Source of the DNA: Auanema rhodensis
Lineage: Eukaryota; Animalia; Nematoda
Reading direction: 5' to 3'
DNA: 64,000 nucleotides
Assembly: GCA_964057225.1 (NCBI GenBank)
Contig: OZ059894.1
Location: forward strand, 16,306,001 to 16,370,000
Shown: positions 4,614 through 60,766 of the stretch, piece by piece
How positions within the stretch are numbered: the stretch's first letter is position 1
How the letters are laid out: every line of letters starts with the position of its first letter
Made by a program: the position numbers and the translations under genes
The notes under the pieces: model-generated
The model's database searches: none
The model's input: the letters and a program-made list of their open reading frames with translations, nothing else
What the model was told of the DNA's origin: nothing

Positions 4614-5996
4614 TTTAACCTATCTTATTTAATATCAAATGAACAGGGTTGAACGGTTGCATATTTTCAATAGTTTCTACAATTCTCAAATAATAGTATC
4701 TTTCGAATTTAAAATTTAATCAATTCTCTTTTTTGATGTTGATTGATAAATAGTTTGTTTAAATGTTTATACGTAATCTATTTCAAATTTGAATTGTTGA
4801 AAACAATTTATATTATATTATAAGTTTATATTATGATTTACTATAACATTTTTATAAATTTTGTACAATTTTTTTATAAAAAAAATAAAAACCAAAAAAA
4901 AAACATTTAAAAACAAACAAAAAAACACAAATTTCAAACGATATCGGTTTGATTACTGTTGCAGAACAGAAAGAGATTAGCAGGACGAATTCAGGAAGTT
5001 TTTGGAAAGATTAGGACACGAATAATAATAATAATTATTGTAATTTGAAAAAAAAAACGAATAAAACAATTTCTTTTCTAAATAAATCATCTGTGACTTT
5101 GGAGAAAAACCTTTTCTATGTTTGTTTGGCGACTATTAAATTGAGGGAAAACTTTAGAATCACAACGAATGGCACAGGTTTACATAGTAATAAAATATTT
5201 TTCTAAACTATAGTTTGAATATAAGCCGAACTAGGTATTTTTTAGGCAACAAGTGGGAAACAGGATGACGGAGGGGGGAGGGAAGGTTTGAATGAAGGAA
5301 AGGGGTTTACGAATAAAGGGGGATGCGTTGAGGAAGATAGAAAAAAAACAGAAAGAATATATATATAACAAATAAAAGAAAAATCCTTCTGATTTTGACA
5401 ACATTTTCTAATATAAATTATAATATTAATGACGATGTTTGGTGATGATATTGGTCTTGAGAAGAAGTAGATAAAGAGAAAATGTATATAGATTCCTAAG
5501 CGTCTCCTAATAGAAGATGAAAATATTTTAAAAAATCAAAAAGAATGCCTAATATGAATGATGAGAGAAGTTTCCCTGAACGTGTTTCGAGCAATATGAT
5601 GACATGGTAGTTAGAAGAGTTGAATGATCATGAATGAAGGCTTTGTTTTGTGTTATATGTGTATGGGGAAGTTTAGCTGTAATGGATTTGATGAGCTGAA
5701 TACGTCGCTGATCAACTGTGTCAATCAGTATTTCAGATGACGATAACGATAAATGAAATCATCAAAGAAAAATATAATTATCTTCAAGGATGAGGAATGA
5801 GGATGGACGACGGACGGCACACCGAACAGACAAACGGGCAGATACCGTCAGAACTGCTAAGCAAGATTCACGAACACCCGGATATGATCAAGAAAACAAT
5901 GAACATCAGAGATTATTAAAAGGTATAGACAAGTCTAGAGTGAGCAAGAGATGCGATCAGGTGACATCAGAAGATAAGCTTCTTATCAACGTCCAA

Positions 5997-17180: not shown

Positions 17181-20100
17181 TTAACGATAATTCTGAAGAA
17201 AAACTAAGTGAATAAGAACAGAACAGAAGGGCAAATGGGTTGGTAAAAGGATACATCTGTACCGAAAAACAGTAAATGAATACGATAAGCATTGAAAGAA
17301 TAGATTCAAGAGTAGACAGGGAATTGAAGTGAAGGTAGTGCTTGCCAATCGACATACATACGATCACGCAGCGTGAGTGAGAGAGTAATAGAGAGCAGAG
17401 GAATAGAGAGTAGAGAGGTGCAGGAGAAAGTAAGTAAAAGAAAAGAGAACAGTAATACAGAGAAACAGAAGAGATAGAAAGAGAAAACGAGACAGAGGCT
17501 GTATACGTTAACCTCTTTGAGTAACACCCTCTTCAGCTGCACTACATTCCTAACAGAACTTTTAGTTAGTGGAACACAACATTGTCCCGACCATATAGGG
17601 CACTGTTTGCCAGAAATATTTGGATTTATCTTTCTTTCTTTATTTCTCAGACTTTCTAATGCTCTATACATGCCGTGTATCTAATGCTCAAAGAATTAGA
17701 AAATAAATAAGAATAGTATTCGAAATAGGAGATAATAGACAGTAAAATAATCTGAGAATATCGTTGAGATGCTAAAAGAATGGCCAACGTGTATGTAGAA
17801 AAAGTAACCGAGTTATGTCAATTTTCTCGGAAAATTTAGCTAATACTGACAATGAAACTTTAAAAAGCTAGTTGAAGTATTATGACTTGCTTAAATTTAT
17901 TTGACAAACACATTCAGAGAGCTCAAACTAATATTCGAAGATAACGTGGAATTGCACATACGGTATGTAGGCCAAATGTGGAGCGAGGACGTGGAGAAGA
18001 TTGTTGTTAACTAGCTCCGAATATTCTGAATCGAATCAACGGGATGTGAACAAGAAGAGGTGAAAACACAAAATATGCATTGAGATAGTATAGAAAAAAT
18101 TGTTTCATTTGTTTCATCATCAACCGTCTTTTGTCGTCAATCGACGTCAGATAATCAGCTCTAAGCCTTCAGAAGGTGTTGTACATTTTGTAATAAAATT
18201 TGTAATGTCAACAAGCAACACACACGAGGTCTTATGTCTTCTTACAGCCTCTTTGTTTCTCTGTTTCTCTAACATTTTGCTATCTGACTGTGTTGACTTC
18301 TGGTAGAATTTGACGACTGTTGCTGAGACTGCTCAATTCTAACGGCTGCTCAGCCACACACACACACACACACACACACTCTTCCTTTCTTCCTGCGTTA
18401 ACCACGTTCTGATTCCATATACTATTCAAATGTTTCAAATTAAATTCTGAAGTAAAGTAATTGATAAGTTGGATGAGAATCAAGTGTTGAAATACATTCC
18501 AACCTTTTCTTCTTTCAGTGTCTGTCTCAGAAATTGAGATTCAATTCTGACTTTTGCTCTTTTATGTGTCTACAGACGGCTTTTCCGTTTAACCAGATGT
18601 GATTTTCCGGTTATACTAAACGCTGAGCACACAGACAGCACATAGGAACTAGAAGTTAAAAGTATTTCAATTGAAGATAACAGAGAAAAATGAAGAACCA
18701 TCTGAAGGTGAATTAATGAACGATAGACTAACGTGAAAAGAATAAAATAAATGGATTGTAATACTACAAGGGTAAAAGGATATTGACATAACATCATCGA
18801 TATATGATATAGAAAAGAGCCAAATATGACAAACATAATGTTTCAAGTGATTTAATTGAAAAAGAAAACGTATATGAAATTTCAAACATAAAATAATTAT
18901 ATTTCAATAGAAAATATTCTAATTATACTATACATACGTATAGATAGACAAAAAAAAAGATTGATATATATACAGAGACAGAAATAGAGAGAGAGAGAGA
19001 AAGAGACAGAGAGAGAGTAATATTACCATATATATTGTAATAACTGTATTGTAGATTGTAAAAAAAGGTTGGAATCTGTGGGACGGAGGACGTACGGACA
19101 ACATCAAGCGACAGGCAAACGATGGATGGAAGAGATTATATCGGACGTATACACGTTACCATCAACGTCCTCCTCTCCTCTTCCTCGTCCCTTCGGTCTC
19201 TATAGTCTCTCAATCTCTGTCCATCCATACGTATAATACTCTTGTCATTCAAGTATTTGATATAAATCAACTGTATAGTTGATATAGTTATATATAGTAC
19301 AATTGAAATAATAATGAAGTTATTAGTATAATTACTCCATTTTCAATTAAATGATTCATTATAAATTGTACAATATAATATAGACAAAGCGTAATGAATC
19401 GTTCATGTACTTTCAAACATCAAAATAACATTGTATTTCAAATGCTTATTAGAATAAACAGCTAAAATACGAAATTCACGTGAATCACGTAAGGATATTT
19501 TCATTTCTCTTTCTGTTGCCGCAAGCTTCGGTTGGTTCTTTAAGTTCCTTTCTATCTTGTCTACTCACTCATTTCTGTTCTCTTTTATCCTTTTTCTAAC
19601 TTCAATATCGTTATTCTAAATCTCTAAATCTCTTTATTTTTTTTTCTCTCTCTCTATTAATCTTTTCCTCTTTCTCTCTCTATTTCTCCCACTTTCTTTA
19701 TTCGTTTATTATCGTTTTGGCGCATTTCGGTAAACTTCCGGCAACGGAAGGGCATGAATATATTGCATGCATTGGATCACTTGAACTAGTGACCACAATT
19801 CCGTCAAACGTGACAGTTATGTTGTCGAAGCAAAAAAAAAAAGAAATTAGTTGATGACCCTTCACGCCTTTCTCAACACAGTAGCTCTCTCACTCTTTCT
19901 CTCTCTCTCTTTCTCTTTCTCTCCTCCTCTCTCTCTTTTTTTCTCTCTCTCTCTATTTCTCACTCTCTCTCTCTCCTAATCTAATGATATGATTAAAAAA
20001 ACAATTTTTCTCTTTTTATTTAAAAAAAATAATAAGTTCAAAGGGCACCGAAACAAATAATTGGACTGTTTATAAGTGTTTCAAATCGAATTGAAAAGAT

Positions 20101-21923
20101 ATGGACAGGATAGGTAGGATAGGTAGGATAACAGGAAATTTCAATGAATAAAACAAGAAATAGATGAGCAGGATGAATGAATTTTTCATACCAAATGACT
20201 GAAAGAACGATCTAGGATGAAAATCAATAAGCTTTTCCTTATTTGGAAAAAATTCTGAAACTGTGACTAGTGCTTAGTGCAAGTCGCACATTAGGATTCA
20301 CGTCTGAAAATTTCAGATGAAGAATATCTCGTAAGTGTACGATAAGTCCTATCAGTCTAATGAATTCAAGCATTCTACTGGAGATTACGGTCCAATTAAG
20401 AAAAGGTTGACTAGAGATAGCTAGATGTCTACTGACTGGATGCCTCTGCTAAGCAGCATGATCCAACGATGGCCATCAAATGACCCGTTTGGCCAAGTTT
20501 TGTGTTCAGTATTTCTACGCTCACCAAATGAACTATTGAATCGACGGAGAGGGGTTAAAGTGATTTGTGAGATTATCACATCGTTATCGTTCTGATGATA
20601 GTTAGAGTAAAGAAGCAAAGTTGTGGTTTCGTTGTTCTGCAAAATTACCTTTTCTAGGCACAGTGACGTTACTTTGACAAATGGTGCGCAAAACAAAGAA
20701 ATTAGAGCAACAGCTTCTTATCACCACAGCTCCGTATAGTTTACAACTTAGAAGAAAATGAATATGACTACAGACTGTTAGAAGTAGGTCGATTTAGGAC
20801 ACGAGAGCTCTCAATAGACAAAGAATAGGATCATCGTGTTGGTGTTGGATGATGTGGTAAGGGGGGCTGGGAGTTAGATATAGGCAACAGGGTTCGACCA
20901 CTCTTGGACCGTTTATTTGCGTTCAGTTGATCGATATTTCAGCCCCAGATTACTGCAGCTGTCGAAAAGCTCGAATGAAAGTGTGCTCTTAGTCCAACTG
21001 GATTAGATTAAACGGCTATGTCTCTTAATGGTACTCATCTATGTCTAAGCTTATCAAAATTTAAAAAGTTGATGAGAGATGATTGAAAGAATTCATAAAT
21101 TGATCATAATTAGTAAATTTCAGTAGTAGATATTGAAGATGTTATTGGAAATGTGTGGGTGACTGAAACTTCTATTTAGACATTGGAGACAACGACGACG
21201 GCAAGACAGCTTCCATCCGTCGTCTGTCTGTCAGTGGAGACATTAAAAGAGAGTGGGAGGATAAACCTTGACTCATATACGGAACCAGCTTCTTCTGTAT
21301 TAAATGTTTCAAAAACTTTCCACGAGACTTCATGAGAGGGAGAAATGAAAGGAGAGACGCGACTAATGTCTAGTCAACTCGCAGATTACAAAACGATTGC
21401 ACGACAAACATGAAACATAGTTATTTTAATATAGTATAATCTGGTTTAAAATATAATTAATTTTTGGTCACTATTTATATGAAAAACATATATTATTCCT
21501 AATATATTTCATTTTAATATCATTTTAAACTTTCTTAACTATAAAATGAAGACAGACACTGAAGAGGAATGTTACAATAAGTAACTAATGAAGGGTAGAG
21601 CAATGGTGTGTGTGTCTGTGTGTGGTGAAATGGAGGATGTCAATTCATTGTTAGTTAAACTGAACGATATCAAAGCCAATATCACTAAATCTTGAACAAC
21701 AATGATTACATACTGCAAAATTAATGAAGATTTTCGTTCGTTTTAATATAAATTTTTACATTCAATTCAATTTTTCTTTCAAATCTCAATGATCCGAAAT
21801 TACAAAAGTTCATTAAACCGAACAGTTACACATTATTGACGTTCTATACGTATCTGTCTCGACGTATGCTTAGAACGCTAACATACTGAACTAGCCAGCA
21901 TCATAGCTTACCCTAACACTCAG

Positions 21924-21940
21924 CCCCCCCCCCCCCCCCC
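21924..21940. repeat. Poly-C tract
   Basis: About 17 consecutive C. Confidence 0.95.
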
Positions 21941-22293
21941 GCTTTGGTTCCTATGGTCTTTCTACTAACATACACACTACATCCCAACCTACTATCGACC
22001 CTTTGCGAGGTCACTCACACTAACATCAACCGACCCAAATGTGTCTTATATTACTATAACCATAACCTATTCTTTTTTTTAATTTATACGTTATAGCTTA
22101 AAGAATAATAGTTATATTACTAATAACATAAAAAGGCTAAATTTTGAATTAGAAGAAATAACTTTAGCATATGAATACCGCGATTTTACAAGAACTATGA
22201 ATTATAAAAATTACAAGAGAATAGAAAGAAGAGAGAAATAAGAATATCGCAACCATTCAATTACTTTCATTACCGGAAAATATGAATAGCAAA

Positions 22294-22334
22294 TGACGTG
22301 TGATTCACGTGAATTTTACGTGAACTCTACGTGT
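22294..22334. repeat. 11-bp-period ACGTG array (4 copies)
   Basis: ACGTG starts at 22296, 22307, 22318 and 22329. Confidence 0.85.
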
Positions 22335-23881
22335 CGAACATTGATTATCTTTTTAGTATATTTAACCAAAAAACACACACACACACAGATCTAACATGAA
22401 GGTATCTGGATATTTGGATAAAAATCAATTTTTTTTGCTGCTGCATATAATGGATCACAGACCGTTCCTCAATGGCGGGGTCGGAATTGTAAGCAAAAGG
22501 TCGCCTGTGCCCAAGAGACCCAGTATTCGTAACAGCTGAACATACTATATCAGCTAAACGGTGAGTGTGCTGCTGTTGGTGCCGCAGAGGTGGTAGGTGG
22601 TGAAAGGAAAATGGAAAAGGGAGCAAAAACGAAGGAGGAAGAGGTATAGGCTCAATCTACGTCAGGCTACGACAATCGGCAATTGCTCAACAAAGACGTT
22701 CCGTTTTAATATCATTTGGACAGTCTGTTTGGGAAAAAGCGTAGTGAGTTTGTGGATGAAAAGTGAAAAGTGAAAAGTTGAATATTTTGAATGAAATGGG
22801 TTAATATATAAAAAAGTTAAATATATATATATATATATAATATTAAATATGAATATATAGAAATTTTATGGAAAAATAGAACATGTGCCTGATAGCGGTT
22901 TTGTATGAGATGGAAAACATGGACAGTATTAACATTATGATGAAGATAACCAACAGCGATCAGATGGTGTTGTTGATGAGGACGATGTGAACGTCTCTTC
23001 TGAATATCCGATTGTGTTCAACAAGCGGATGTCCGCTAATTGCTGAACGATTTCGGCTACTGACAAAGACAGAATAATAAATCGATTGATCATCCTGTAT
23101 ATGTAGATATATATTATATTATATGTTTATAGTATATAGTATAAGATACACATATACATATATCGTATATTCTTCACAGACGGATTCAATCTTAAAGCTA
23201 CAGACGGCAGGATAATACAATGTCGGTACCTAAGGGAGTTGTTACGCTTCTGAAACATTGTGTATTCGGTAGAGAGTGTAAGAGAAAAATTACACAAAGT
23301 ACTTCGTTAGTATGAGAGTATAAGTCAGATTAAGAGACTTAGACTGTTACTCATTTTTGACGACCCATACGGGTTAAGCGTTCCGGCACATAGAGCTAGG
23401 TTAGACCGGATTACTGGAATAACATGCAGAGAATGGATGTGCAAAGATTAAATGAAACGCTTGGATAACTCAAGCATTGCAAATGCTTAATATACTGTGA
23501 GTTATATTTCTGGATAACAGTTTTACTAGAATTCGGATTGTTGAGCAAAACGAAATTTAAATGATGAGCTTAGCATACATCCTATAAAGCGTTCATTCCT
23601 TGTCCTCACTCATCAACCACACCCACCAAGCTTTTCCTTCTTCCTCTCTTCCCTCTCGTTTACTCTGTCTGTCCGTTCCGACAAAATCTAAATCGATGAC
23701 CAGCCCAACTCGAAACTGACGAAGAGTGCCGAAATTGGCCTCGGACATAGCTAATTGAATCAGATCGGAACCTTATCCCCTTGTGTGGTATAACCAATTA
23801 CGGTTGTTGCAAAGTGCACAAGCGGGCTAACTGATGAACAAATTTATTCAAAAGCTTTACCCTTTTATTCCCTCTTCATCT

Positions 23882-23901
23882 CCCCCCCCCCCCCCCCCCC
23901 C
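23882..23901. repeat. Poly-C tract
   Basis: About 20 consecutive C. Confidence 0.95.
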
Positions 23902-24607
23902 TCCATTTCTGTTCAATATTTTGGTCGAATTCATAGAAAACACGGAAAAAGTGCATAGTTAAATAAAGGAGGAAAAAGTTATAACAGCTGAAAATTTTGG
24001 GAAAATTAAATGTTTCATTTGGCTAAGCTGCGTGCCTTGAAAACTGACTGAATCATGCAAATTTTTATTCTCTTAGTCTCTCTCTCTCTCATGTAAATAT
24101 TCCCTCTTAATTTTTCTTCGACTTTTTCTAATTCACTTCATGTCTGCTACTCATTCTCTCATTTTATTTTAACAAGCTGGCCATATTTGAGAGTTATCGT
24201 CTAAATACTAAAGGCTATTTCAATGAATGAAAACTGGCGACGAGAAGAGCAGTTAACAGGAGAGAACAAGCATTGAACAGAGTGATGCTACTGCTACACA
24301 ACTACAACTACGATAGGCTAACGATTAGTTTTGTCAGATGTAAAATACATCAATTGATTTATAAAAGGACAGAAGCACAACAAGGCTCTTGGCTATGACC
24401 AAATTAGGTTTCAATCTATTGCCAATGAGTCCTGTCTAGCTTCTGGTTTTGCTGAATGTAAGCTGTGAATTAGATATAAGCTTTGAAACCAATCGATTAA
24501 TGAACAAGGAAAACGACAGTTAATGCATATGAAGTCATGAAACACAGACAGTAGATTCGTTTTCCACAAATTCATAGTTAAATATAAAGACAGATACAAC
24601 AAGCAAG

Positions 24608-24624
24608 AGAGAAAGAGAGAGAGA

Positions 24625-24686
<62 letters not shown>

Positions 24687-24687
24687 G
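24608..24687. repeat. (GA)n microsatellite
   Basis: Long, near-perfect GA dinucleotide run. Confidence 0.95.
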
Positions 24688-24962
24688 ACAGTTTGAGAAA
24701 TAAAAAAAGAATAAGCTAAAAAACGTCAGTAATTAGTATGATAGTTCTGCATAGTATATAAAGATATATGTATGTACATTGTGAGTAAAGCAAATCACTT
24801 GAATTGATAGATTCCTAATGAGGAAATGCGAAAGGTCAAGGAAGGGGTCAGGCCACATACAACTGGGTTTGGGGCTGATGATGCCTAGGTTATACGTATG
24901 TATGTCTGCGTGTGTGCGTTGTGTATGTGTTGTATGTTTGATGTGCTCAATCAAGGCCTAAA

Positions 24963-24979
24963 CCCCCCCCCCCCCCCCC
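24963..24979. repeat. Poly-C tract
   Basis: About 17 consecutive C. Confidence 0.95.
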
Positions 24980-27042
24980 TCTCCTGTCCACACCATCTCA
25001 TCAAGCTACACCAATATCATCAATCTATTCATTCATTCACTATACATAGTATGTAAAATGACAGTTATGAACTTCAGTACAGGTGAGAGCTGAGAGCATC
25101 AAGAGGTATTTCATTTCATTGGACATGAAGTGAACAAAGGGCAAAGAGAGTATTTCAATGAAAAATCGTCTTTTCTGAGAAATAACATGAGCAATTTCAA
25201 TAAATACTTAGCAAGGTTTAAAAGCAAAGAAACAAATTGAATGATTATTCGAATGAAACAAATTTTCAAATTGAAATGATTACTGTATAGCCTGCCGATA
25301 ACTCTCGGAGCGTCCAGTAATTAGAATGAAAATTTGAAATTAAATGTTCAAATTAATTCGAAAATAAATGTGAACAAAGTATAGAGAAGCTATACGTCGA
25401 GGAGGTAAATGAGGTTGTAGAGATAATAATACCGGAGTTTGGGATGGATAAAGAGTTCGGAGAGAAGGTCGTTCGGGTTGAGTTGCACACATACAGCAGG
25501 TTGAGTTCACTGATGAGATATTAGAGAGATCAAAGAAAAAAACAAAATGAGATATAAAAAATAACTCTAATAAGATAGAGAGAGATAACAGAGAAGTAGA
25601 GACAGAGATAGAGAGAGAAAAGAGGGGAGGTTTGGAGGGTTATGTCTTACTTCCACACTATGACCCCTGCACAGACGACAACCATTTATTGTAGAAATAG
25701 CATGGTTAAGCTAGAGAGAATGACTGGGGCCATAGTCATATTACACACAACACGCAGATTCTGCATCTCTGACCTCTTCTAACCCTTTCTACAGCATCCC
25801 CCCTCCTTTTTTCACTTTACACAACATCCAACCACCACATACAGCCCTACCACAACGATAGACCAAAATGAACGGAAGCAATGAATTGAAGTTGATGATG
25901 TCGATGATAAAGGTGATTGAAATGTAAAGAAATGAGAGGCATATCGAACCTTTTACCCAATCAACAGAAACAAGAACATTCTTTGATTTCAATTGATACT
26001 GTCTGGTAGACCAGGTAGTTGCAGCATCAGTTACCCTCTTTCTCTGTTCTAATGAAGTTTCATTTCTCTATCACTGTATCTTTCTTTTTCTCTTCATTTC
26101 ACTCTCTCTCCTTCTTACTCTCTTTCTACCTCTCTTCTTGATTCGACGTGATAGCTACTGCTCCTTTTCTCTGTTCCATGCAGATTCAACTTGATGATTG
26201 CCCTTGTGAATGCCACACGTAATCTGGTAGACAGCATTCCGAGAGAAACATGAGAAACACACAAATAAAGAAATAAAGAGGGAGAGAGAAAGAGAGAAAG
26301 GCTCAGATCAACAGTTACTACAAGAGAATTACAGACGGAAATTTGTGTATAGTACAAGAGCCGGTAATATAGGAAAGATCAGACGTCTGACAAGCTGCTG
26401 ACAAGATGATTCAGATATTTCGACCTATTCATAAGCTAATTGTATCAACATTATTCTAACCGCATCCATGCTAAACTAGATACAAATATATAAAAAAACG
26501 TTTGATTCAAGGGTATATAAGATCTTCTATTGACTATTCAAGTTCGTAAGTTCAAATTCATAGAAAGGTTATATAAAGAAGGATTATAATATTCAGAATA
26601 AATTATATATAGTTAGTTTATTATAATTATCTAAATAAACATAATTTAAAAGTAAAAAAAAAAGTATATTTCTCTTATAATTATAGTTTTAATTAAAAAA
26701 TAAAAGAAATATGAATAGTCAATAGATAAAAGCATTACTATCTTTTACCAAATCACTTGAAATTTATCTTCTAAACTTCAAACTATCTCGAATTAATGTT
26801 GTAAAGAAGAGCTTACAAAACATGGTGATATAGCACTGACTATGGTAGACGAGGAAAGGTAGAGAAACAGAGAAACACGTCCCACACAGCTCAGCTAATC
26901 CTAGGGGAAAGAGTTATGGGTCTGTGTAGAGCTACTGCGGTGCAATTGCCATTCGACCGGCTGGCAATTTTTTGTATTTGGACCCTTCTGGCTGTGGGTT
27001 CCAACGGGAAAATAGACAGAAGGTTAGATATAAGACAGATGG

Positions 27043-27093
27043 TGCGTGTGTGTGTGTGTGTGTGTGGTGAGTGTGTGTGTGCGAGTGTGTGTG
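27043..27093. repeat. (GT)n microsatellite
   Basis: Directly visible, interrupted. Confidence 0.85.
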
Positions 27094-30000
27094 TTACTCG
27101 TGGTCGTTTGTGGCCTGGTTTGACGTTAACGCTCGTGCTCGAACTCAACGTGGGATGACAGAAGGGCTGAACGTAGCAGACAGAGTGGTTCTGGTTGGTA
27201 TTACTACTCAACTGGCATCCAAGCTATATTCTAGAGGCAAACGAATAAAAGAGCTTTCACATAATTTAGCAAGATAGTTATTGAATTGTTAATTATGTGA
27301 TTAACCATCGGTAAACTAAGAACAGATCGCATAATTTAGAGGAAATATGCAAAAATTCAGTGGAAATAATTAAGAATGAGACGGAAATAATAAGGTAACT
27401 ATGTTGAATTCAACTTTCTTTTTCCCTAATAGGCGAACAAAATCGAACTAACCTCAAATATAGTTAGCAAATATATAAATTAAACAAATAACTAATCAAA
27501 AAAGTGAAGAACAATGAAATATAATAAAAGGCATGCAACATGAATGAATAAAAGATAGATGGGGGGGCATTGAGGATTGACTTGTCTATCCAATAGACGT
27601 CTCAAGTAGGTGTTAATTATGCGATTACTTAGTTTGTTATATACACATATTAACTATACGTTATACAATAAACTATGTGACTTATTCTCTCATAAAATTA
27701 AAGATTGACACTCAACAGGATGTTGTATATATCTACTTATCTAAATGAGAAAAACAACAAAGAAACATGTAGGGATGAGCTTGGCAAATAAAAAAGAAAA
27801 TGCAACCGTTTTCGGCTTTTAGTAACAGAAGAAATGGATTGATTCACGTGATACACTTTTACGTGAGCATGTATATGTGAATCAAGTTGGTACCAAAACT
27901 CGAAGAAGAAGAAAAAGGTTACAACTTTCAGTTAAAAAAAGGTTTCGAATTGAATTCTTTGGAAAGAAAAAGTTTCAGCAAATGAGATCATGAATGAACA
28001 ATTCGTATGGTAATGTATAGAGAATAGTGAAAGGACAATACATATAACAATATGTTTTAACATGATGATCCAATACTCTATCATATGTATCTTCTATCAA
28101 GTTAGTACATTAATTCAATATTAAAATAAAAAAGAAAACAAATATAATTAATAATAAATAACAAAAAAATAAATCAATATCTTAATTATATTATATAGTT
28201 AAATAAAATTAAAATAAGTAATATAAGAATGGATCAATCAATTAGTATTTATATAAAATATTTAATAAGATGTTAATAAGAGTTAGTTGTAGTTTTGTAT
28301 TTGGAGTGTGCACATAAGATTTTGAAATTAAAAAGAGAACATAAACTTAAAAATAAAGTTAACATATACTTAAGAAGATTATTAATATTGAACTTTTATT
28401 AAGTTATATTCTAAATATTATGATAATACTAAAATGAAGATCAATTCATCATAAACTATGCTAGTTAGTACAAGTTAGTTCAATTTTCTATTAAAATAAT
28501 TTATATTTAATTTAAAATTAAATTTAAAAAAAAGGTTCAAATAAAAGTTTGAAAATAGAAATTTTATCATGAAAATGATTTTTTTTGTTAAAAGAAAATT
28601 GATATACGATATGATAAATAGTTAATAGGTGCAGAAAATTGTTGGTTAAAGGTTTCAAATTAATGAATGTTTCAAGAAGAAAATGATCAAGAAAGAAAAA
28701 AAAAACGAAAGAACGGTAGAATGAATAGAGTATGAATGAGAAAAGAAGACGTCTCAATCGAAAGGAATGACGATAAAAAACGGGAATCGTCGACTTTGTC
28801 CATCGTAGTCCATCGTCGTAGCCGTTGACGAAGTCGTCGTCTGGCTGGTCTCTTTTTCTATTAGTTTCAGTGATAACGTTGATGATGATGCTTGTATACA
28901 TAGGATGAGGCATAGTAATAAGAGTAAAAGTAATAATTAATAATAGTTTAATAGATATATGTTATTGTAAGGTTAATATAAAAAAAATTATTATAAGAAT
29001 AAACTTTTTCAAGGATTACTAGTTATTACTAGTTGTATTCATAATAATATTCATAATAACTATTATTATTATATTACAATTACAATTGAGAATTATTTTT
29101 TATATTTCCCAAAAAAAATTTAAAACTGGACAAAGTTTGTGAATTGACGAGCCGGAAACGGTATTTAGGTTCTTGTTAATCGATCAGTACAAGTGGCCAA
29201 ACTGTAATACCGATTCATTGAGTTCTAACCAACTGATCGGCTTATGGACAAGTTCTGTTTAATCATAATCTCTAATATTTGGAAAGAGTAAAACAGCTAG
29301 AATATAAGGCACCGATAGAGAGTAATGGGAGGGGGGGGGAAGATGGGTGGCAACGAGCGATGGGGGGACCCAGAGTGGGAGAGAGTGGTAAACTAAGCAG
29401 GTTCGTTCTGTGGTTCAGGTAACTCTAGAACCTTTTTGATCAAATCCGGCAATCCAGCAGACAATGAGATAGAAGACAATGTGCTGAGCGAAAAAGAGAG
29501 AGTATGGATAGGCAGAGAACATCATGCATATCCGCAATGAAACACAAGAGGATGATGCGACAACAACGACGACCACAACGACGACGACGACGAAGCCAAT
29601 GCATTTCGAGACATAGACATTGATTAGCGTTTCGTATGATACGGAGACAAATGATGTGCCAGCAAGCAAGCCAAACCATTATCTACGACAGCAAAATGAT
29701 TCTGATCAAAATCTGCGATGAATTTATTGTTTAAAACAAGACATCTATCTGCCAGATTATCGATTAATCCAATTGACAGAATAACAGAATTTTCATTGGT
29801 TGTTGTATATATATATATACTATATATACTATACTATACTAGATATATAATCAATTTGAATTTTGTGTCTTTTATAAAACATATATGAAGAGAATAAGAG
29901 AAATAGAGACAAAAAAGAAAATACGAGAATGTGAGAGAGCAAGAGAGATGGTGCACTTTGCCCTTAATTAGACGGACACGCTCCACAAAGTTGGTTTCAT

Positions 30001-32610
30001 AAGCAATGAAAATTAAGCTTTTGCTCTTAACTATTGAATATAATTATATTCTGAGATATTAAAGTGGTAAATATGAGTATATAAGCATTCACAATTAAGA
30101 AATGTTTATTTAATTATAATTATAATTATTATAAATAATATTTTAAATATAAATATATATATATGTAAATTCACAAACATATATATATATATACACTTTT
30201 GAAACCTAACTGTATGCATAGTTCGTCGAGCGTTGATGTATCATGATTGATGATCACCAACCATTTTGAATATTAAAAACTTAAATGAAAGCATTATATG
30301 GATGTCATCAACATATATGATTGTTTGGTTTTTCATATTTAAAATATAGTTAGCTATATCATATGAATATAAAAATAATATATAATAATTGAGATAATTC
30401 AGAATTACAGATGAATTTCTTATACTATAACTTATATTATTATTATTATTATTATAATGATATTTAGATATAGTTAGGCTGCAGATTGATAGATCTCTTG
30501 TCTTCAAAATCTAAGTTTCCAATAAAGCCATATATGACGGAAATAGAAAAGAAAGATTAATCGTTGATATACAATTACTACAGTTGATTGAATACTCTGA
30601 TTGTGGGATTGCCTTGATCGTTTGAATAAGGAGATCGTACAAACAGTTTAGTTGATTGCATAGTCGAATTTCAAGTAAGATGGCCGCATTAATCGAATTC
30701 AGAATTTTAGAACATCACTTAAAAGCGTCAGCAGCAACCAGTTTGCAACGATAACATTAAAAATATGAATGAGGAAGATCATATTTTATTACATAGAATT
30801 ACACACCGGTAATGGAAAATAAAGTAAGATTCGAAACTTGCTATCATCGATGCTTTCAGTTATTGCTGCAGATATAACAACAGAAGAGAGTAATGTGGTA
30901 GTGATGGTGAGAATGGACTAATGATTACCCACGTCCTTGGTATCTGGTATAGTTGTAGCAGAAGAGGAGGAGAGAGAACGAGAATCAGAAGACAACGTGG
31001 AGGAGTACAACGGCATTTCTTTCAATCAAATGGCTATTACGTTTGTCTTGACGAAAAATAATCATTCGTGTGGTATAAGAATACGGTTAAACGATAACTA
31101 AATACTTCTGAAAATCAGTCTTTTATGAGAATTTTGATGGAATGTGTATAGTTTGACCAACAATCACGTTTAACTAAACGTGATTGTCAATACTTCTTAT
31201 ACTTATGATGAAGATGATGATGGCAAGAATGATAATACGAATGTTGAAAAAAGGAAATTATTGATAATTTTCATGAAGAAAAGCATCAAAAGGAAAAGGA
31301 CATTCAGAGGGATGATGTCGGTAAAGATGCTAGCAGACACGATAGGTGCTGATAATTGATCAAATTGAACGTAAAAATTAGTTGTCTGCCAGACACTATC
31401 GATGGACACACGGTTTTCAAAGCCTAATTAGAGACGAGAAAACGTTTCTCAGCGTTCCTTGATATGATTTTCACTAAATTCCTTCTGGGGATCATATAGA
31501 AAATTTGAAGAAAAAACGGGAAAAGGTGTTTCCTCGAAATTACAAATAGTATAGTCTATACTATATTGTATAATAATAAATAATTTATACATATATTCTC
31601 CGAAATTTAACCTCCGTTTTCCAACATAACAAACTTTTTAGAATAATGAACAAGTTGGATTTTCTAAATTGTTATCTGACGTTCAAAAAGTTTTTGTTTT
31701 AGCAATGTTTGTCTAACACTTTCTATCAGCCCTAACATCTTTTTCGTTATTTAGTCAATATCTCAGTAATGTTCTTACTTCAAGTTATAAGCCTTTTTAA
31801 CATTTCTATCAAGATACAATATCTTTTCTATCTTTCGAACTCTTCACTATCAGCAAGTCTACGACAATCCTAACACCTAGAACCAACTTGTCTCGACGGA
31901 CGGACGGAAAGACGGACAGACAGACGCCTGTCCTGTTGTGTAAATCCCGCACATTCGTTGAGACCAGATTTCACAACATTGGTTCAAACTTGCCCCGCTC
32001 TAGCTGTAAACCTTTACGAGATGTCCGATTTTTTTTCTGAAAACCTATTGCAAGAACATCCAGAACTTCTTTTTCTTTCTGGAAAAATCAATGCAACTGA
32101 CGAATGTACAAGTGGCACAAAGAGTTAACAAGGACAATCCGTAGCATTTCCAAGGGATCTCAGAAACTTTTTCATTTTTCCCATAAAATAGTGTATGAAA
32201 TACTATCGAGCAAAGACAACATATCATCACATTTCTCTCAAAAAAGTGCGTAAGAATCATCATCATAACACAGCTGATTAGAGGAAAATCTCTCAATCTA
32301 TTATAAAGATGATAATAAAACTAAAATAATCTGAGAGATATGTGAGACCATTAAATTTCTTAAAAAAAAATGAAAAATTAGAAAAAGATATTTAAGTTTA
32401 CTTAGTACATGTGAACTTCATTAAGCATAATTATTTTTTTTACAAGAAAATAAGTAAAACATTCAAAAAGAAAATTTGAAACATGGAATATCACAGTAGA
32501 AATCTTTGAGATCATTGAGATTGTTCTTATAAGCAAGGGGGTTAGTACATTTTTTTCAAAAAAAAAAAAATAAAATGTTTAAAGTAAAATGAAAATACTA
32601 GAAAGTATTT

Positions 32611-34866: not shown

Positions 34867-35070
34867 ATGGTTGTTTCACCATCTTCTTCATGTGATTCTG
34901 ATTGGGATTTAAGAAAACATGACGAAGATACATTATCGTCTGGAAGTTCTTCATCTGAAAGTCTTTTGACAGTGGCACATCATCCAGTTGTAAGATAATT
35001 ATTTAAGATATATATTTAAGATATTATAGTTAACGTTAACACCTCCATCAACACCTGAAACAATAGCTGT

Positions 35071-35101
<31 letters not shown>

Positions 35102-35694
35102 TTGTATAAATATATGAAACTAATCTATATTTATTATTTCAGGATAATATTACTGTGAGAAATCGGAAACGAAAATTGTAATAAATTCCTTTATGTATCA
35201 TTTTTAATTTTTATATAATTTTAGGCCTAAAAAAAATGAAAATGTAGATGAAGTAAGTATTATTGAAATTGAATATTTTGTATAAAATATAATGTTTAGA
35301 ATCTAAGTAAGAATGTTAATGCTCAATGGCAATCAGAAAATAAGTTACAAAAAAAGAAAACAAATATCAAGTTTGATTTACCAAAGGTAAATATTACAAA
35401 TAAAATGAATAATAATAATAATTGTTTTCGAAAACATTTGAAAGTTTGGTTCGTCAAATCATCGAAGAAACCTCAGGCAAGGACTATATGAGAATAACAT
35501 CAGACGCATTAGATATCTTACAAGAAGTAATATTATTTTATATAATATATTTATATTTATAATTATAATTATAGAATGCAGAAAAATATATAACTTATAT
35601 GTTTTTTGTTCAAAGTCAAATGATGTTTGTTAATGGACAAGATTGTTTACAGATTGAACTATTCCGAAGTTATCTAGTCTGCAAAAACTTATAA
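34867..35694 (+). CDS. Highly divergent histone H3/CENP-A-like histone-fold protein (about 175 aa); 7 exons
   Basis: Exons 34867-34989, 35030-35068, 35143-35177, 35225-35252, 35300-35386, 35431-35526 and 35575-35694. The C-terminal part FDLPKKTFESLVRQIIEETSGKDYMRITSDALDILQENAEKYITYMF aligns with H3 [45 protein letters not shown]. This model needs a CG acceptor at 35429-35430. Confidence 0.72.
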
Positions 35695-36407: not shown

Positions 36408-37916
36408 AATATAATATAAATTAAGAAAACATTTGTTAAAATACTATGGCATGTTGTTATTTCTAATTTTTTATCAGCAATAAGTAATGTTGTTGTAACA
36501 CTTCCTGTAACATTATTCAATTTTGATGCAAAAGAATTTAAAGATTTTAAAGGAACAGGTATACATACTACAATGAAATCTAATAATTTATTTTGTTTTT
36601 TTTTAGTTATTTACAGAATATTCAAACCATTAACATCATTTTCTGTAGAATTAAATCTTTTATTAAGCTTTGTTATAGCTCTTCAAAGGCTGTTTGTTTT
36701 TGTATCTTCCAGATTAACAACATTAATATTTGAAGGGTAAATTTAAATATAATAAATTGTATTTATAAATATATAATTAAAGATATATATTCTATATAGT
36801 TATGTTAACAGTATGGATTCTTACATTTTCAATTACTTTCTTATATGAATATTTCTCTTGTTCATATGTATATGATGATAAATACTATATGTATAGATAT
36901 ATATGTGAAATGAATGAGAAAACTGCTTTAATGCTTAGTTCAAAAGTTGAAATGGTTAAAACTAGTTAATATATAATAATTATTATTAATATGTATTTAT
37001 TATAGTTTGTCATTTTACATAATTTGGCTATTCCTATTATAATATTTATCATTTATATTATAATATTTATTCGTATATATAAACAAAGACGAGTTATAAA
37101 TGCAGTAAAATCAATTACATTTGAAAAAGAAATATTGAAACAAGCATTTATTCTTTTTTTAGCTTTTGAAGTAAAATTTATTATTATTTATAATTTATTT
37201 TAAAATTTTATTTTTAGTTAGGATCACTGTTCTCTATTTATATTCCAAATAGAGAAATTAGATCCACAACAGCTTTTCTATATAATCGAATTGACATGAC
37301 TGTATGTTTTCATTTTGATTTTTGATTTTTTTGATATCATATACTATGACCACGTACTTATTTATACTAATATTATACTAAATATAAAATATTAATATGA
37401 AATGAAAATAATTAATTAATTTTTCAGTTAGGCTTATTATCTGGTGCTCTAACGCCAGTTCTCTCAATCGGAGCATGCAGTGAGATTCGAAATGTTTTAA
37501 ATTTTAAAACATTGAAAAAAACTAAAATAGCAGCAAAAGTTGCATCATCTATCGTAAGCAATCTTTGTAAATCGTGGGTCTTATTCCGATGTCAAATCCA
37601 TACTTGATATAAGTATGTAACAAATAACGTTGTATAAGTAATATTTTGATTTTTACATAGATAGAGAGAGGGAGAGAGAAAATGAGAGAGAGGGAGAGAG
37701 AAAATGAGAGAGAGGGAGAGAGAAAGTAAGAGAGAGAAATAAATATATTTTAAAAAATAACGGAATAAGTACCTCAAACATACATTTACACATGTATATT
37801 TAAAGAAAAAACAAATTTATTCGTATCTTCAGAATTTATTGTAGGATGTATCACCAACAAACATAAACTTGGGAAACAATCGTCCATCTTCTAGTTATTC
37901 GCAAAGCTCTGATTAA
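36105..37916 (+). CDS. Serpentine chemoreceptor GPCR, class X (Srx)-like
   Basis: Eight or nine short exons join in frame, giving about seven hydrophobic segments with FVIALQRLFVF, CSYVYDDKYYMYRYIC and FEKEILKQAFILF motifs. The 3' end is ambiguous: read-through stop at 37607, or a last exon 37845-37916 via atc|gtaag. Confidence 0.8.
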
Positions 37917-38089: not shown

Positions 38090-40751
38090 ATGATTCGGTC
38101 GGTCGAATACCATGATGTTGAATTACATACAACAGATAATGAAATGTATATCATTCATATTAAAGTTTTAAATTAAAATAATTTTAATTTAAAGATTTCA
38201 ATGGAGGGAAAGTGAAATAATTCGATTTATTCCATCACTTATAAATATATTACCAACAAAACGTGGACAGAAACGTATTCAATTATTACTAGATGTTCCA
38301 TTTGATTTATATATAGTAATATACATATACTTGATAAATATATTCATATATATATATATATGATTATATACATATAATATTATAATTTAGATGAAAATAT
38401 TAAAAGAATTTTCTCAAAAAGGATATATTAATGATCAATTATCATTTAGTGATTATGAATATATGTTGAAATCAATTCAACAATTTCCAAAACATGAAAT
38501 AAGAATGCTTGAAGTAAGTTGGATATAGATATTAGAATGTAAATGATAAAAATCATTTTAGGATCATATATTTTCAATTTTATATAAAGATATTTGTAAT
38601 ATGAATTGTATAGGTTTTTGGTTTCTAGCCATAAAATATGAAAATGAAGAATATATTAAAAAGGTAAAAAGAATATGAAGAAAATGACTAATATGTGTAA
38701 TTTTCGGCCAAAATCTTTATATTAGATAATATTTTTCGTGCTTGTGAAGATAAATCAATAGATTATCATTTTTACAGTAGGTAAGTACTATGAAATATAT
38801 TTTATTATTTTAATTATACGTAAATATTAGATTAACAAAAGAACAACTTGAGGATATTATATCAGATAATGAATTAAGTATAAATACAGAAGAAGATGTT
38901 ATATTAATTATATTAACATGGATTGGTATTATAATATATATATATATATAGTTAATATACAGTTAATTTATATATTCAGATGCAGTACCTTTAGAACGGA
39001 CAATTTATCTTAAACGTCTGATGAAACATGTAAGAAAAGATGGAATACGAAAGGTTATCTTTAGCTATTTTCAATTTATTAATAAATTTTTATTTAGAAA
39101 ATGAAAGAAATTGTATCAATGTTACAAACAATTCCTGTATCTGAAGTGATATTCAGTTCAGAACCGTCCAGACATTTCAAGGATAAGGTTCTAACTTGCA
39201 GAAGTTATCAAATGAATAATAACATCTTGTATATACAGTTATTGGTTTGTGGTGGGCATCAATACGATCCAGAAACATCTCAATATGGTCCAACAACTTT
39301 AATGGAAATGTATGATTTGGTTTGTTAATTTTATAATTTGAAAGTAAACTTATCTATATTTATAGATTAATAACCGTTGGATTAAACTAGATTCACAACT
39401 TCCCTATTCTATATCATATCATGCCGCTTTATATCTCAATGATGTATTAATTAATAATATAATATATGTTTATATATTGAATTTTAAATATTTTAATAGG
39501 ATTTATATATATTTGGTGGATCAAGTACTAAAGAAATAGCTTCTAAGAAAGGTGTCAAACTTCGAAATGGCATATGGTATCCAATAGCTGATTTGAATCA
39601 ACCAAGGTGATGTAAACTTTTTTAATTATGCATTACATTGGAAGTAACTAAAGAATATAATTGTGATCTGAACAAATTTAAGATTAAAAAAATGAAATTT
39701 ATAATATAAAATATATTTTTAGAAGTTATATCACAAATTCATGTTGTATATATAATCAGGAGTTATATGTAATAGGAGGACATAATGGACATAGACGGGA
39801 ACGTACCAATGAACTATTTGTATGTTATATATAATATAATATTAATTAAATATACTATATACTATATACTATATAATATATAATATATTTATTATTATTT
39901 ATAGGCAATTGCTAATACAAGATTGAAATCAGTTGAGAAGTATAATCCAGTGAAAGATGAATGGACATTTGTTAGGTAATATTTAACTTTTTTTTAAAAT
40001 CTAATATATTGAAAATATGTTTATTCTTATTATTATTATTTATATAATTATATACATGTAATATTTGAGTGAAATGAATTTTGGACGATCAGATGCTACG
40101 TGCTCAGTGCTAAATGATCGCATTTATGTTTTCGGAGGATTTGATGGAGTTAGGGTTAGATTTTTGAATTAATTTTTCGTATAATTAATATGTTTTAGAT
40201 ATTAGATACAATTGAAATGTATGTGCCATCGATTGATCACTGGACTATACTTGAACCACGTCTTCCCAGTCCTCGATCTGGTATTGAATGATGAAGCATT
40301 ATGTTGCATGTTGAAGTTATTCAGGCTTATCATCCGTAGTATATAACGATCATATAGTATTACTTGGTGGATCTGATGGACAAACACGTCATTCAACAAA
40401 CTTTAGCTTTTATCCAAAAAGTGAAAGTTGGACAATTGGTGATGATATGATATCAGCCCGGTATGCAATTGAAATATTTTTGTTAAACAATCATCTATTT
40501 AAGATCAAACTTTTCGGCTTGTAAGCTTGGAAAGAATATTGTGGTTGTTGGTGGATTCAGTCGTAATGTTCTACGTTATAGCGAATTGTAAGGATATTGA
40601 GTAATGAGTGTCAGCATATATTTTTTTAAATTTCAGTCTACATGAAGATCATTGGCAAGAAATAGCTAGTATACGAGCATCCAAGAGTGCTTTAGCTGCA
40701 GTAGTCATACCACATTCTGATGAAGCAAGTTTATTCAGTGTTAAGATATAA
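38090..40751 (+). CDS. BTB(degenerate)-BACK-Kelch repeat protein (KLHL10/KEL-10/SPE-26-like family); about 18 exons
   Basis: BACK segments NCIGFWFLAIKY...AKIFILDN and LTKEQLEDIISDNELSINTEEDVILIILTWI...YLKRLMKHVR. Kelch repeats LLVCGG, LYIFGG, LYVIGG...LKSVEKYNPVKDEW, RSDATCSVLNDRIYVFGGFDG, IVLLGGSDG and RSNFSAC...IVVVGG. Stop at 40749-40751. One intron needs a CG acceptor (38705-38706) and one a GAG acceptor (40067-40069). Confidence 0.88.
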
Positions 40752-52490: not shown

Positions 52491-53786
52491 ATGTCACTTG
52501 TAAGGTGGATGCATCTATTGCTCCTTCTAATTCCGCTACATGTTTCATCGTTTCTATTCAATTCTGCTTCTCAAGCTCCTCAATGCTATGAACTAGATTT
52601 GGAAAATTGTTTCAGGGAGGCTTTCTTGGTAAGAATTTATAAATAATAACAATAAATAAGATTATATGAATCATATTGAAACTTAATCATTTTTATCATT
52701 CAGGCTGCTTTACATCCACCTGTAAGACTACGTAAAGAATTAGGTTTTTTCAAATTTAATAATACAACAGTAGACAAAAGAAGAGGTATATATAGTTATC
52801 ATAATTCTAAAAACTATTTTCTATTAAGGAAATCGAAACTTTTTTCTTTGTCATGATGTTCGAAGACTTTCATTATGTTTCTTGTATCCAGGATGTAGTG
52901 ATCAAATGGCAGCATCGGTTAGTCTCATATTCCCAGTTTGTTTTATAAACATTTTGAATTAAAATATAATTTCTTCAAATAGAAATTTTAAACAAATTGA
53001 TATTTTTATTTATTAGTTTTATTATTATTCAATAATTATTTAAAAACCAAACAGGTAGCAGCTGTTCAATATCACATGGTGTTTGGTAAAAAGTTACCAA
53101 TGCAAGTATTTCTTGCTTATCGTGGCTTTGGAAAGCAGGTAAAGTTAAATTTAAATTTATTATTCATATTTATATTTTAATTTATAAATAACTATGTCGG
53201 TTAAGGTATGTGATCAAACATGTTCACGGGATACAGTATTCATCTGTAGGCGTTCAATGACTAAGGATGAGCAGGAACAGGAACAGGTTCATTTCTAGCT
53301 TTATCTAACGAATTATCATTCATATTTCAATTTCAGACAGCTTTAATGGAACTTAATTCACTTTCATCTCATATATCACCAGAAAAAGATAATATAGGAA
53401 CATGTCAACGTTTTCGTAAAGCTTTAGCTAAGGTTAGTTATATTCATTTAAGTTTTTAAGTTATAATTAAAGTAATATGCTAATTTCTTTTCAAAATTTT
53501 CTTTGTAAATATATTTGATTATATATATTTTATTTAAATATATAATATTATTATATAATTAAAGGTTTTACGATTTCGTTTGGAAAATTGTGTGGATGCA
53601 GCTCATTGTACATGTGAAGATTCTCTATTCTATAATGCTGTTAATATATGTTCAATTAATTGTGAAGCTGTATTACAACAAGAACAATTAGCTTTAGTTA
53701 ATACAGGAATCCGAAATTCTATACATTTCTTAGATATACTAACTATATTCTTTATACATTCGTATATTATATCATTAATCATTTAA
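52491..53786 (+). CDS. Nematode-type secreted Cys-rich protein with hydrophobic C-terminus (possible GPI anchor); 7 exons
   Basis: ttttctcag acceptor at 52472 upstream of the ATG; signal peptide MSLVRWMHLLLLLIPLHVSS; in-frame exons encoding QCYELDLENCF, FLCHDVRRLSLCFLYPGC, VCDQTCSRDTVFIC, GTCQRFR and NCVDAAHCTCEDSLFYNAVNICSINC; hydrophobic tail. Confidence 0.8.
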
Positions 53787-59084: not shown

Positions 59085-60766
59085 ATGTATGAGACAGATT
59101 CAAATATTCGAACTTTGAAAAGTGTCTTCATTGGATCTGAAGAAGTTGGGAAAACATCATTGATTGTGTCATATACAACACAAGGATATCCAACTAAATA
59201 TATTCCAACAACATTTGATAATTATTCAGGTAAATATATAAATAAAAAATTTAAAAAAAGTAATATTATATGATATAATAATAATATTTTAGTTGTGGTC
59301 AATGTGGATAACAAGCCTATTAGAGTTCAATTATGTGATACTGCAGGACAGGTATGTTATTTATATTTTTTCTAATATTCATATAGTTATAATATGAAAA
59401 TATATAAATTCACTTAATATAACCACATTCAATATCATATTTTTTGAAATAAAATATGTGTCATCATCTTCTTTTCAACATAGTGATATGCTAATTGAAG
59501 CTTTTTGAAACTTGAGAATTATATCCTTATTTCTTATTGTTTTTGTGTATTATGATATAGTTAGATGAGAGGAAAAAAAATGAAAACCAACTGTAGTTGT
59601 TGATGACACGTGCCAGTGGTCCAGCAGAAACAGCATTTGAAGATCTGGGTGCTGGAAGATATGTCATTGGAACTTTTTGTACAAGAGATCCATTAACTCG
59701 AATCATTGGGTTTCGACTTATGAATTTACGGAACAATGTGCTAAATTATAGAAAATTAGTTGAAATATAAACGATAAGCTTGCCTTCCTCTGGGATGTTG
59801 AGCAGTCACAAGTAAGCTGATTGCAATAAAGCAAAAGAATGAATAAGATGACATAATATGAATAATATTCTTAAAAATGAATAGATATGTATGAATGAAT
59901 GTGATTTAATGAATAGAATGAATCCTGAAAGCTTCAATGAGTTTAGGGAGGAGTGAAGACAGAGTTTGACAGCTTTCAGAAAACAAAGAGATGCATCCCA
60001 GACAAAGAAGGACAAATTAAACAATATCAATTTGTTTAAGATTCTATAATAAGAATTTTAACAGTTTTTGCTATTTTTTTGGAAAATTTAAGTGGAAATC
60101 ATAAATGATTTACAGCTTTTTCAGTCTTGAATTCTGTTTTTTCAGCACAAGTTTGATGGGCTTCGACCTTTATCGTATCCAGACTGTAATGTATTCATTG
60201 TTATTTACTCGGTCATCAATAAGCGATCGTATGAAGAGGTTTTAACAAGATGGATGCCGGAAATATCAAAAGTTTCTCCAAACACACCTGGTTTGTGAAA
60301 TTTATACTTTTTGTACTTAAACTTGTAGTTTTTTAAGCTTTTTTTATTCAAAAAATAGACAATTTGAGACAAAAATTGTTTTTTTGTTTGTTAAAATATT
60401 CTTTTTATACAATTTATTTACAGTTATTCTTGTTGGAACACAATCTGATCGACGTGGATGGGAAGTCAATGTAGCTGATTGTATTTCAACGATGAAAGGA
60501 AGACAATTAGCTAATCAAATTCGTGCTATTGACTTCTTTGAATGTTCAGCATTAACTCAAGATAATCTGAAACAGGTGAATATATAACGGAGAATCTTCT
60601 TTATATTATTTTATTATTTAATTAAAATTTTATATAATTCTAGATGTTTGACGCTGTCATCTTAGCTGGCTTAGAAGAACAGAAGTCCTTTGGAAAGCGA
60701 CCGCAAACATCAAAACTGAAGCAAGGATTTCAACGACTTATTCATATGACAAGAAAATTAATGTAA
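59085..60766 (+). CDS. chw-1: Rho-family GTPase, Chp/Wrch (RhoU/V) subfamily; 5 exons
   Basis: tttcag immediately before the ATG; [53 protein letters not shown] (RhoU/V-type G4), [20 protein letters not shown]; no CAAX box. Confidence 0.9.

Follow-up and report, generated by a model that had tools for sequence, protein, structure and literature searches.

Two introns in the window, i.e., the 64,000-nt stretch of Auanema rhodensis DNA analysed here, end in CG in place of AG. One is intron 4 of an H3/CENP-A-like histone-fold gene and the other, at a distance of 3277 nt, is intron 4 of a BTB-BACK-Kelch gene (Table 1). On balance we lean towards real splicing at the CG of the H3-like intron, with the Kelch intron as a second such case, where use of the site in vivo as well as its efficiency are inferred from the DNA. 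Either non-AG sites are spliced in this worm, or the two genes share the same rare defect. Few signals of eukaryotic genes are as invariant as the terminal AG, and in animals only few natural exceptions are known. If the CG is used, we would face a constitutive non-AG acceptor at an old intron position that is canonical in the sister lineage. Such a site would reveal how much splicing can be achieved when U-tract, length and donor are the only features recognised, and it would offer a natural species pair in which to ask which change of the spliceosome allows CG. A gene finder that accepts nothing but GT-AG would cut genes of this kind short or miss them. If the CG is unused, the finding reduces to a curiosity, i.e., two parallel splice-site lesions in dispensable genes.

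Table 1. Features of the two CG introns, their host genes and their orthologues in Auanema sp. JU1783. L002 denotes the JU1783 locus with the H3-like and Kelch orthologues; a slash within a sequence marks an exon-intron boundary.
Feature	Location	Strand	Description
H3/CENP-A-like histone-fold gene	34867..35694	+	162 aa, ORF intact, no internal stop
H3-like exons	34867-34989, 35143-35177, 35225-35252, 35300-35386, 35431-35526, 35575-35694 (incl. stop)	+	
5' splice site, H3-like intron 4	35384..35392	+	AAG/GTAAAT, consensus donor
Intron 4, H3-like gene	35387..35430	+	GTAAAT...TGTTTTCG, 44 nt, phase 0, 14% G+C, CG 3' end
3' splice region, H3-like intron 4	35424..35431	+	GTTTTCG/A: U-tract, C, G, then purine
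Exon 5, H3-like gene	35431..35526	+	KTFESLVRQIIEETSGKDYMRITSDALDILQE, 32 aa; helix 1 to start of helix 2
First AG 3' of CG, H3-like gene	35443..35444	+	GAAAG/T, 14 nt past CG, no pyrimidine tract
AG in frame with donor 35387	35480..35481	+	95-nt intron; helix 1 wholly lost; Histone 13.4 bits
H3-like protein parts, window			before intron ..IKFDLPK; exon of 32 aa KTFESLVRQIIEETSGKDYMRITSDALDILQE; last exon of 39 aa NAEKYITYMFFVQSQMMFVNGQDCLQIELFRSYLVCKNL
BTB-BACK-Kelch gene	38090..40751	+	573 aa, 17 exons, ORF intact; introns 15 GT-AG and 1 GT-CG
Intron 4, BTB-BACK-Kelch gene	38664..38706	+	AAG/GTAAAA...AATTTTCG/GCC, 43 nt, phase 0, CG 3' end
H3-like orthologue, JU1783	L002 8923-9264	-	78 aa
Intron orthologous to 35387-35430, JU1783	L002 9243..9187		57 nt, AAG/GTTAGC...AATTTCAG/AAT, canonical
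H3-like protein parts, JU1783			before intron MKFEIPK; exon of 32 aa NSFDRIAKRILSDVSGRRYFRFTQEALDIVHA; last exon of 39 aa ECESYLLEMFSVQKELTFLFGQETLLIEHFRAYLLVKHT
Kelch orthologue, JU1783	L002 4412-6856	-	557 aa
Intron orthologous to 38664-38706, JU1783	L002 6319..6271		49 nt, CAG/GTGCAG...TATTCTAG/AGT, canonical

The H3-like site reads ...TTACCAAAG/GTAAATATTACAAATAAAATGAATAATAATAATAATTGTTTTCG/AAAACATTTGAAAGTTTGG, which corresponds to the frame TTT GAT TTA CCA AAG/GTAAATATTACAAATAAAATGAATAATAATAATAATTGTTTTCG/AAA ACA TTT GAA AGT TTG GTT CGT. Excision at the CG, i.e., the junction TTACCAAAG-AAAACATTT, fuses FDLPK and KTFESLVRQI in frame. Both the letters and this join bear out the 44-nt GT-CG intron of phase 0 that the first-pass annotation had placed here. 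If the boundary is shifted by one base towards the 5' side (GG..TC), the mRNA stays identical, and the sole placement with a GT donor is GT-CG. The 3' end GTTTTCG/A equals the nematode consensus TTTTCAG/R without its A, or TTTTAG with a C at position -2. The remaining four introns of the gene are GT-AG with lengths of 153, 47, 47 and 48 nt.

We also compared the CG junction with the canonical alternatives. No AG is present from 35387 through 35442. The first AG thereafter would close an intron of 58 nt and is out of frame with the donor, as the first-pass annotation had stated; it is missing from the list of in-frame pairs with the donor at 35387. The exhaustive list of frame-keeping GT/GC-AG pairs holds 6 entries, every one of which cuts into helix 1 of the histone fold. 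Among them is the alternative 35371-35444 named before, which is indeed in frame and removes KFDLPKKTFES. The Pfam Histone profile (curated cut-off 26.4 bits) scores the C-terminal 100 residues of the CG-spliced product with 32.1 bits, continuous over residues 4-71, while the two best in-frame GT-AG alternatives reach 21.8 and 13.4 bits, such that only the CG junction exceeds the cut-off. In a search of solved structures, the H3-like product matches histone H3 and the CENP-A of the fly (Cid) best, over helix 1 to helix 2. Here, LPK/KTFESLVRQI aligns across the junction with IRK-LPFSKLVRDI (H3) and IPK-LPFSRLVREF (Cid). The earlier claim that a CG splice is collinear with H3 thus holds, given the Histone score and alignments that cross the junction. 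Only a join directly behind the G of TTTTCG yields an mRNA with the exon junction of the orthologue and an undamaged helix 1.

By its sequence, the host gene is lineage-specific and codes for an H3/CENP-A-like histone fold in a rhabditid nematode of the Auanema type. It resembles the H3/CENP-A family (Cid, HCP-3) in its Histone score above the cut-off and in its H3-type best matches, but differs by a length of only 162 aa, an unrelated serine-rich tail and weak scores (best E = 7e-4). A protein-database search with the spliced H3-like C-terminus gave no match.

The first-pass annotation had further announced a second case 3.3 kb away with the same donor, length, phase and TTTTCG end, which we found in the Kelch gene with a length of 43 nt. 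Its CG junction is ATTAAAAAG-GCCAAAATC, and the pyrimidine tract upstream of it reads ATTTTCG/, the H3-like counterpart being GTTTTCG/. With this junction the BACK domain is complete (47.8 bits, profile 1-91), while the best canonical in-frame alternative loses 23 residues and retains 41.1 bits over profile 38-91 only. A shifted boundary (TA..GG) again leaves the mRNA identical, and a GT donor is obtained only with GT-CG. The nearest AG after the CG, TTATATTAG, lies 19 nt downstream at 38725 and is out of frame. With the closest AG out of frame in both genes (14 nt past the CG in the H3-like and 19 nt in the Kelch gene), the CG, if used, would be the sole productive site in each. Matches to AAGGTAAA-N(25-45)-TTTTCG are found at two places of the window versus 0.01 expected from shuffles, a count that is only indicative because the pattern was picked post hoc. 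A third TTTTCG candidate (40461-40516) turned out to be spurious, as a canonical 43-nt intron at 40461-40503 (GTATGC...TATTTAAG) restores the spacing of the Kelch repeats. The same holds for a TTTTTTG candidate at 33805, where a canonical TTTCAG is located just past the candidate. A protein search with the 74-aa Kelch exon returned spurious repeat proteins only.

To place both introns in a comparative context we used Auanema sp. JU1783, whose contig CALQYR020007214.1 is collinear with the window from about 19 kb to 61 kb. The gene order CPG4, 78-aa gene, Srx receptor, 557-aa BACK-Kelch gene is common to both, and a nucleotide alignment is even possible for many of the non-coding blocks. The CPG4-domain gene directly upstream of the H3-like gene has a JU1783 orthologue (P0117) with 72% identity, and the RhoU/chw-1-like gene (59085-60760) shows 88% identity to a JU1783 protein.

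The gene-poor region 19000-32000 contains many short blocks that are 80-97% identical to the JU1783 contig (e.g., 23723-23860 with 90%, 24783-24865 with 93% and 21959-22075 with 87%). Since their conservation extends to all reading frames, these blocks probably represent RNA genes or conserved non-coding elements. Rfam searches of the window on either side of 37182-37220, a place inside the Srx receptor gene around one of its short introns, gave no match. In the one long intron, intron 2 of the RhoU/chw-1-like gene (59352-60145, 794 nt), a block of some 200 nt (59530-59745) has 72% nucleotide identity to JU1783; it is open in frames on both strands and may be a nested element or regulatory sequence. 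On the minus strand at 54.7-55.3 kb, the model of the small cysteine-rich gene probably lacks an upstream exon; a good TTTCAG or CTACAG acceptor precedes its apparent first exon in both species (window 55323-55300; L001 7870-7880).

Both CG introns have a JU1783 counterpart at the identical codon boundary. In the H3-like gene, the sister junction is MKFEIPK/NSFDRI... and is followed by exons of 32 and 39 aa in each species. In the Kelch gene, ...NELYIGQ/SKKHILENIF... (JU1783) corresponds to ...NEEYIKK/AKIFILDNIF... (window), and each species has flanking exons of 34 and 25 aa. All introns read among those of the sister orthologues are canonical. In this comparison of orthologous introns, a check proposed in the first-pass annotation, position and phase are shared in both genes and the sister introns end in AG. 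As codon boundary, phase and flanking exon lengths all agree, both introns are real and older than the species split, and the orthologous positions imply that the G of TTTTCG directly precedes the next exon. In terms of sequence, 35387-35430 is therefore a genuine spliceosomal intron with position and phase conserved in the sister species. Since the JU1783 introns are canonical, the CG end is either derived in the A. rhodensis genome or an error there. A dropped A (TTTTCAG) and an exchange of A for C (TTTTAG) are equally possible, as the intron ends of the two species have diverged too far to tell.

The orthologues share 42% (H3-like, 77 codons) and 63% (Kelch, 190 codons) of their amino acids without any indel in the compared exons, and the respective dN values are 0.55 and 0.33. 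A dN/dS ratio is not computable as synonymous sites are saturated between the window and JU1783. Both host ORFs are intact over all exons (162 and 573 aa). Judged from these sequences, the data argue for long-term constraint on both host genes, and a very recent loss would be compatible with it. Protein searches found no homologues of either gene outside Auanema. Exact-ORF look-ups returned no annotated or transcript-derived protein, and no A. rhodensis database protein, be it annotated or assembled from RNA, was found for the host genes.

The JU1783 H3-like gene is annotated as a bare histone fold of 78 aa starting with MKFEIPK, while the window gene needs the four upstream exons (34867-35386). 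No counterpart of the serine-rich basic tail encoded by exons 1-4 was detected in JU1783 (L002 9264-9900). The JU1783 Kelch orthologue shows a one-base frame change near GGAAAAC (L002 about 5760-5790, minus strand) when compared to the window exon 39098-39319. This is either a homopolymer assembly error or a real frameshift, and the 557-aa product as annotated has to bypass the change.

It is conceivable that the H3-like reading is a chance chain of ORFs, or that the gene starts downstream of the site, such that no intron exists at all. The undetected counterpart of exons 1-4 and the MKFEIPK start in JU1783 fit this idea. On the other hand, the window carries ATC at the codon that matches the orthologue's ATG, and exon 4 is free of in-frame ATGs. 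Furthermore, exons 4, 5 and 6 match the orthologue residue for residue and share the intron position, and the Histone score exceeds the Pfam cut-off only across the junction. Given the Histone scores as well as the orthologous alignment and intron position, this explanation is largely refuted and we regard it as extremely improbable.

To see how far the two introns deviate from their surroundings, we curated 47 introns from 7 genes of the window by hand via exact junction peptides. The set covers the H3-like, Kelch, CPG4, RhoU and Srx genes as well as the conserved genes at 52.5-53.8 kb and 54.7-55.3 kb. GT-AG is found for 45/47 introns and GT-CG for the remaining 2/47. Lengths range from 40 to 153 nt, plus one intron of 794 nt, with many of 40-50 nt. 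A donor of type G/GTAA[AG] is present in 2/2 CG introns vs 5/45 canonical ones (chance 0.019; post hoc and from a small sample), and a length of at most 44 nt in 2/2 vs 6/45 (chance about 0.026; post hoc and only nominally significant). A strong donor combined with minimal length fits a picture in which a weak acceptor is compensated. At position -3 of the 45 GT-AG acceptors, we observe T 18, C 18, A 8 and G 1 times, and some of them have no pyrimidine tract. Examples of such loose acceptors are 52918-53054 (CCAAACAG), 53139-53205 (CGGTTAAG) and 39976-40069 (TATTTGAG), several having scarcely any pyrimidine tract. Window-wide ORF-joining statistics on acceptor motifs have no power in this AT-rich DNA, i.e., true TTTCAG sites scored like controls.

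As the main rival explanation, the CG ends could be true genomic lesions that the spliceosome does not use. In that case, the introns are kept or cryptic AGs are taken. For the H3-like gene this means 35444 (frameshift) or 35481 (helix 1 deleted), and for the Kelch gene TTATATTAG at 38725, which shifts the frame and leads to a stop after 11 codons. Both genes would then be dead or hypomorphic, their alleles having perhaps reached fixation by drift under selfing or inbreeding. Several observations are in accordance with lesions: both host genes are fast-evolving and lineage-specific, i.e., of a kind that can tolerate loss, which also speaks against CG use, and no homologues were found outside the genus. 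JU1783 carries an ordinary AG in either position, and hence no conservation of the CG backs a function. Cryptic AGs are available in the H3-like gene, the Kelch gene offers a decent canonical acceptor 19 nt downstream, and the generally weak acceptors (8 AAG and 1 GAG of 45) fit relaxed selection on splice signals. Against lesions, no further defect is observed over the 6 (H3-like) and 17 (Kelch) exons. Moreover, the same hexamer TTTTCG appears twice, sparing the U-tract and the terminal G and following a rare consensus donor both times. Two lesions of identical type in two otherwise intact, orthologue-collinear genes make chance decay unlikely, as had been argued in the first-pass annotation. 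We roughly estimate random decay at <1e-3, i.e., very unlikely, and overall consider unused lesions an unlikely explanation.

Alternatively, the assembly might be wrong at both sites, with the A lost from TTTTCAG or one base of TTTTAG miscalled, such that both introns are ordinary GT-AG introns. In both cases a single base restores a perfect nematode acceptor and the frame is the same either way. Such errors do occur in related assemblies, given that the JU1783 Kelch orthologue has at least one apparent single-base frame break. However, the general error rate is low here, since the 7 curated genes need no frameshift or stop, and the altered base is outside of any homopolymer. Two random errors that both hit acceptor position -2 would have a probability of about (50/64000)^2. 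The A. rhodense PacBio HiFi assembly has 236-fold coverage in gene-rich regions (preprint 10.64898/2026.08.27.747507), and an error would be very unlikely if the window stems from it. Taken together, we rate an assembly error at both sites as improbable.

For splicing at the CG itself, which we favour, the following mechanism appears most likely. Where U2AF acts on UUUUCAG/R, the nematode machinery would read the short U-tract adjoining the junction, and the 3' splice machinery would take very short introns as a unit. The 3' cut would then be placed at the CG, aided by the AAG/GUAAA donor, the near-minimal length of 44 nt and the purine at exon position +1, with the Kelch intron as a second member of the same kind. 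On sequence grounds, a functional non-canonical intron class is plausible. More tentatively, and with doubts prevailing, Auanema may have a relaxed 3' splice code in which the A at -2 is dispensable, while U-tract and terminal G are enough for introns of minimal length with a strong donor. Such a code would touch a few percent of introns. If true, an altered U2AF35 or second-step proofreading would be implied, and GT-AG-only gene finders would mis-annotate systematically.

Finally, we relate the CG introns to known systems. Compared with U2-type introns, 35387-35430 has the GT donor, the collinear ORF and the shared position, while the AG at the 3' end is lacking. Its donor is a textbook U2-type AAG/GTAAAT and belongs to the strongest donor class in the window. 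U12-type introns (AT-AC or GT-AG) similarly tolerate non-consensus terminal dinucleotides. Nevertheless, a U12-type assignment is rejected, i.e., the donor GTAAAT is none of /ATATCC, /GTATCC or /RTATCCTT and no TCCTTAAC branch site is present in the 44 nt. Rhabditid nematodes are not known to have a minor spliceosome. A nematode from another clade has a similarly AT-rich genome with many introns <60 nt, and its spliceosome has been proposed to be tolerant of odd sites. There, the share of odd splice sites was not reproduced by a later EuGene annotation, in which the GC donor was the sole non-canonical site allowed (bioRxiv 10.1101/2025.03.20.644268). That claim is based on automatic gene models and is disputed, while orthologous intron position and domain collinearity are available here.

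The nearest precedent is C. elegans, which, according to PMC4484395 (citing Aroian 1993, Zhang & Blumenthal 1996), can splice at non-AG acceptors, mutant ones included, guided by a TTTC tract. Its natural exceptions are restricted to alternative germline sites, with three germline-preferred non-AG acceptors described, namely TG, AT and GG (PMC4484395, Ragle 2015). These sites share with ours the rhabditid host, a short U-rich tract adjoining the junction, the GT donor and the non-AG junction. On the other hand, CG is not among the documented C. elegans dinucleotides. Furthermore, each natural site in C. elegans is a proximal alternative at most 18 nt from a strong somatic AG, whereas the CG sites are unpaired: both introns have the adjacent pyrimidine tract but no strong in-frame AG within 18 nt, which speaks against CG use. 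The ordinary short UUUUCAG/R introns of nematodes, whose acceptor U2AF recognises, agree with the CG introns in length (43-44 nt), G+C content (14-23%), AAG/GTAAA donor and conserved position as well as in the TTTT tract, the C and the purine at exon position +1. What sets the CG introns apart is the A of the terminal AG, which is present in 45/47 introns of the window and missing in these two.
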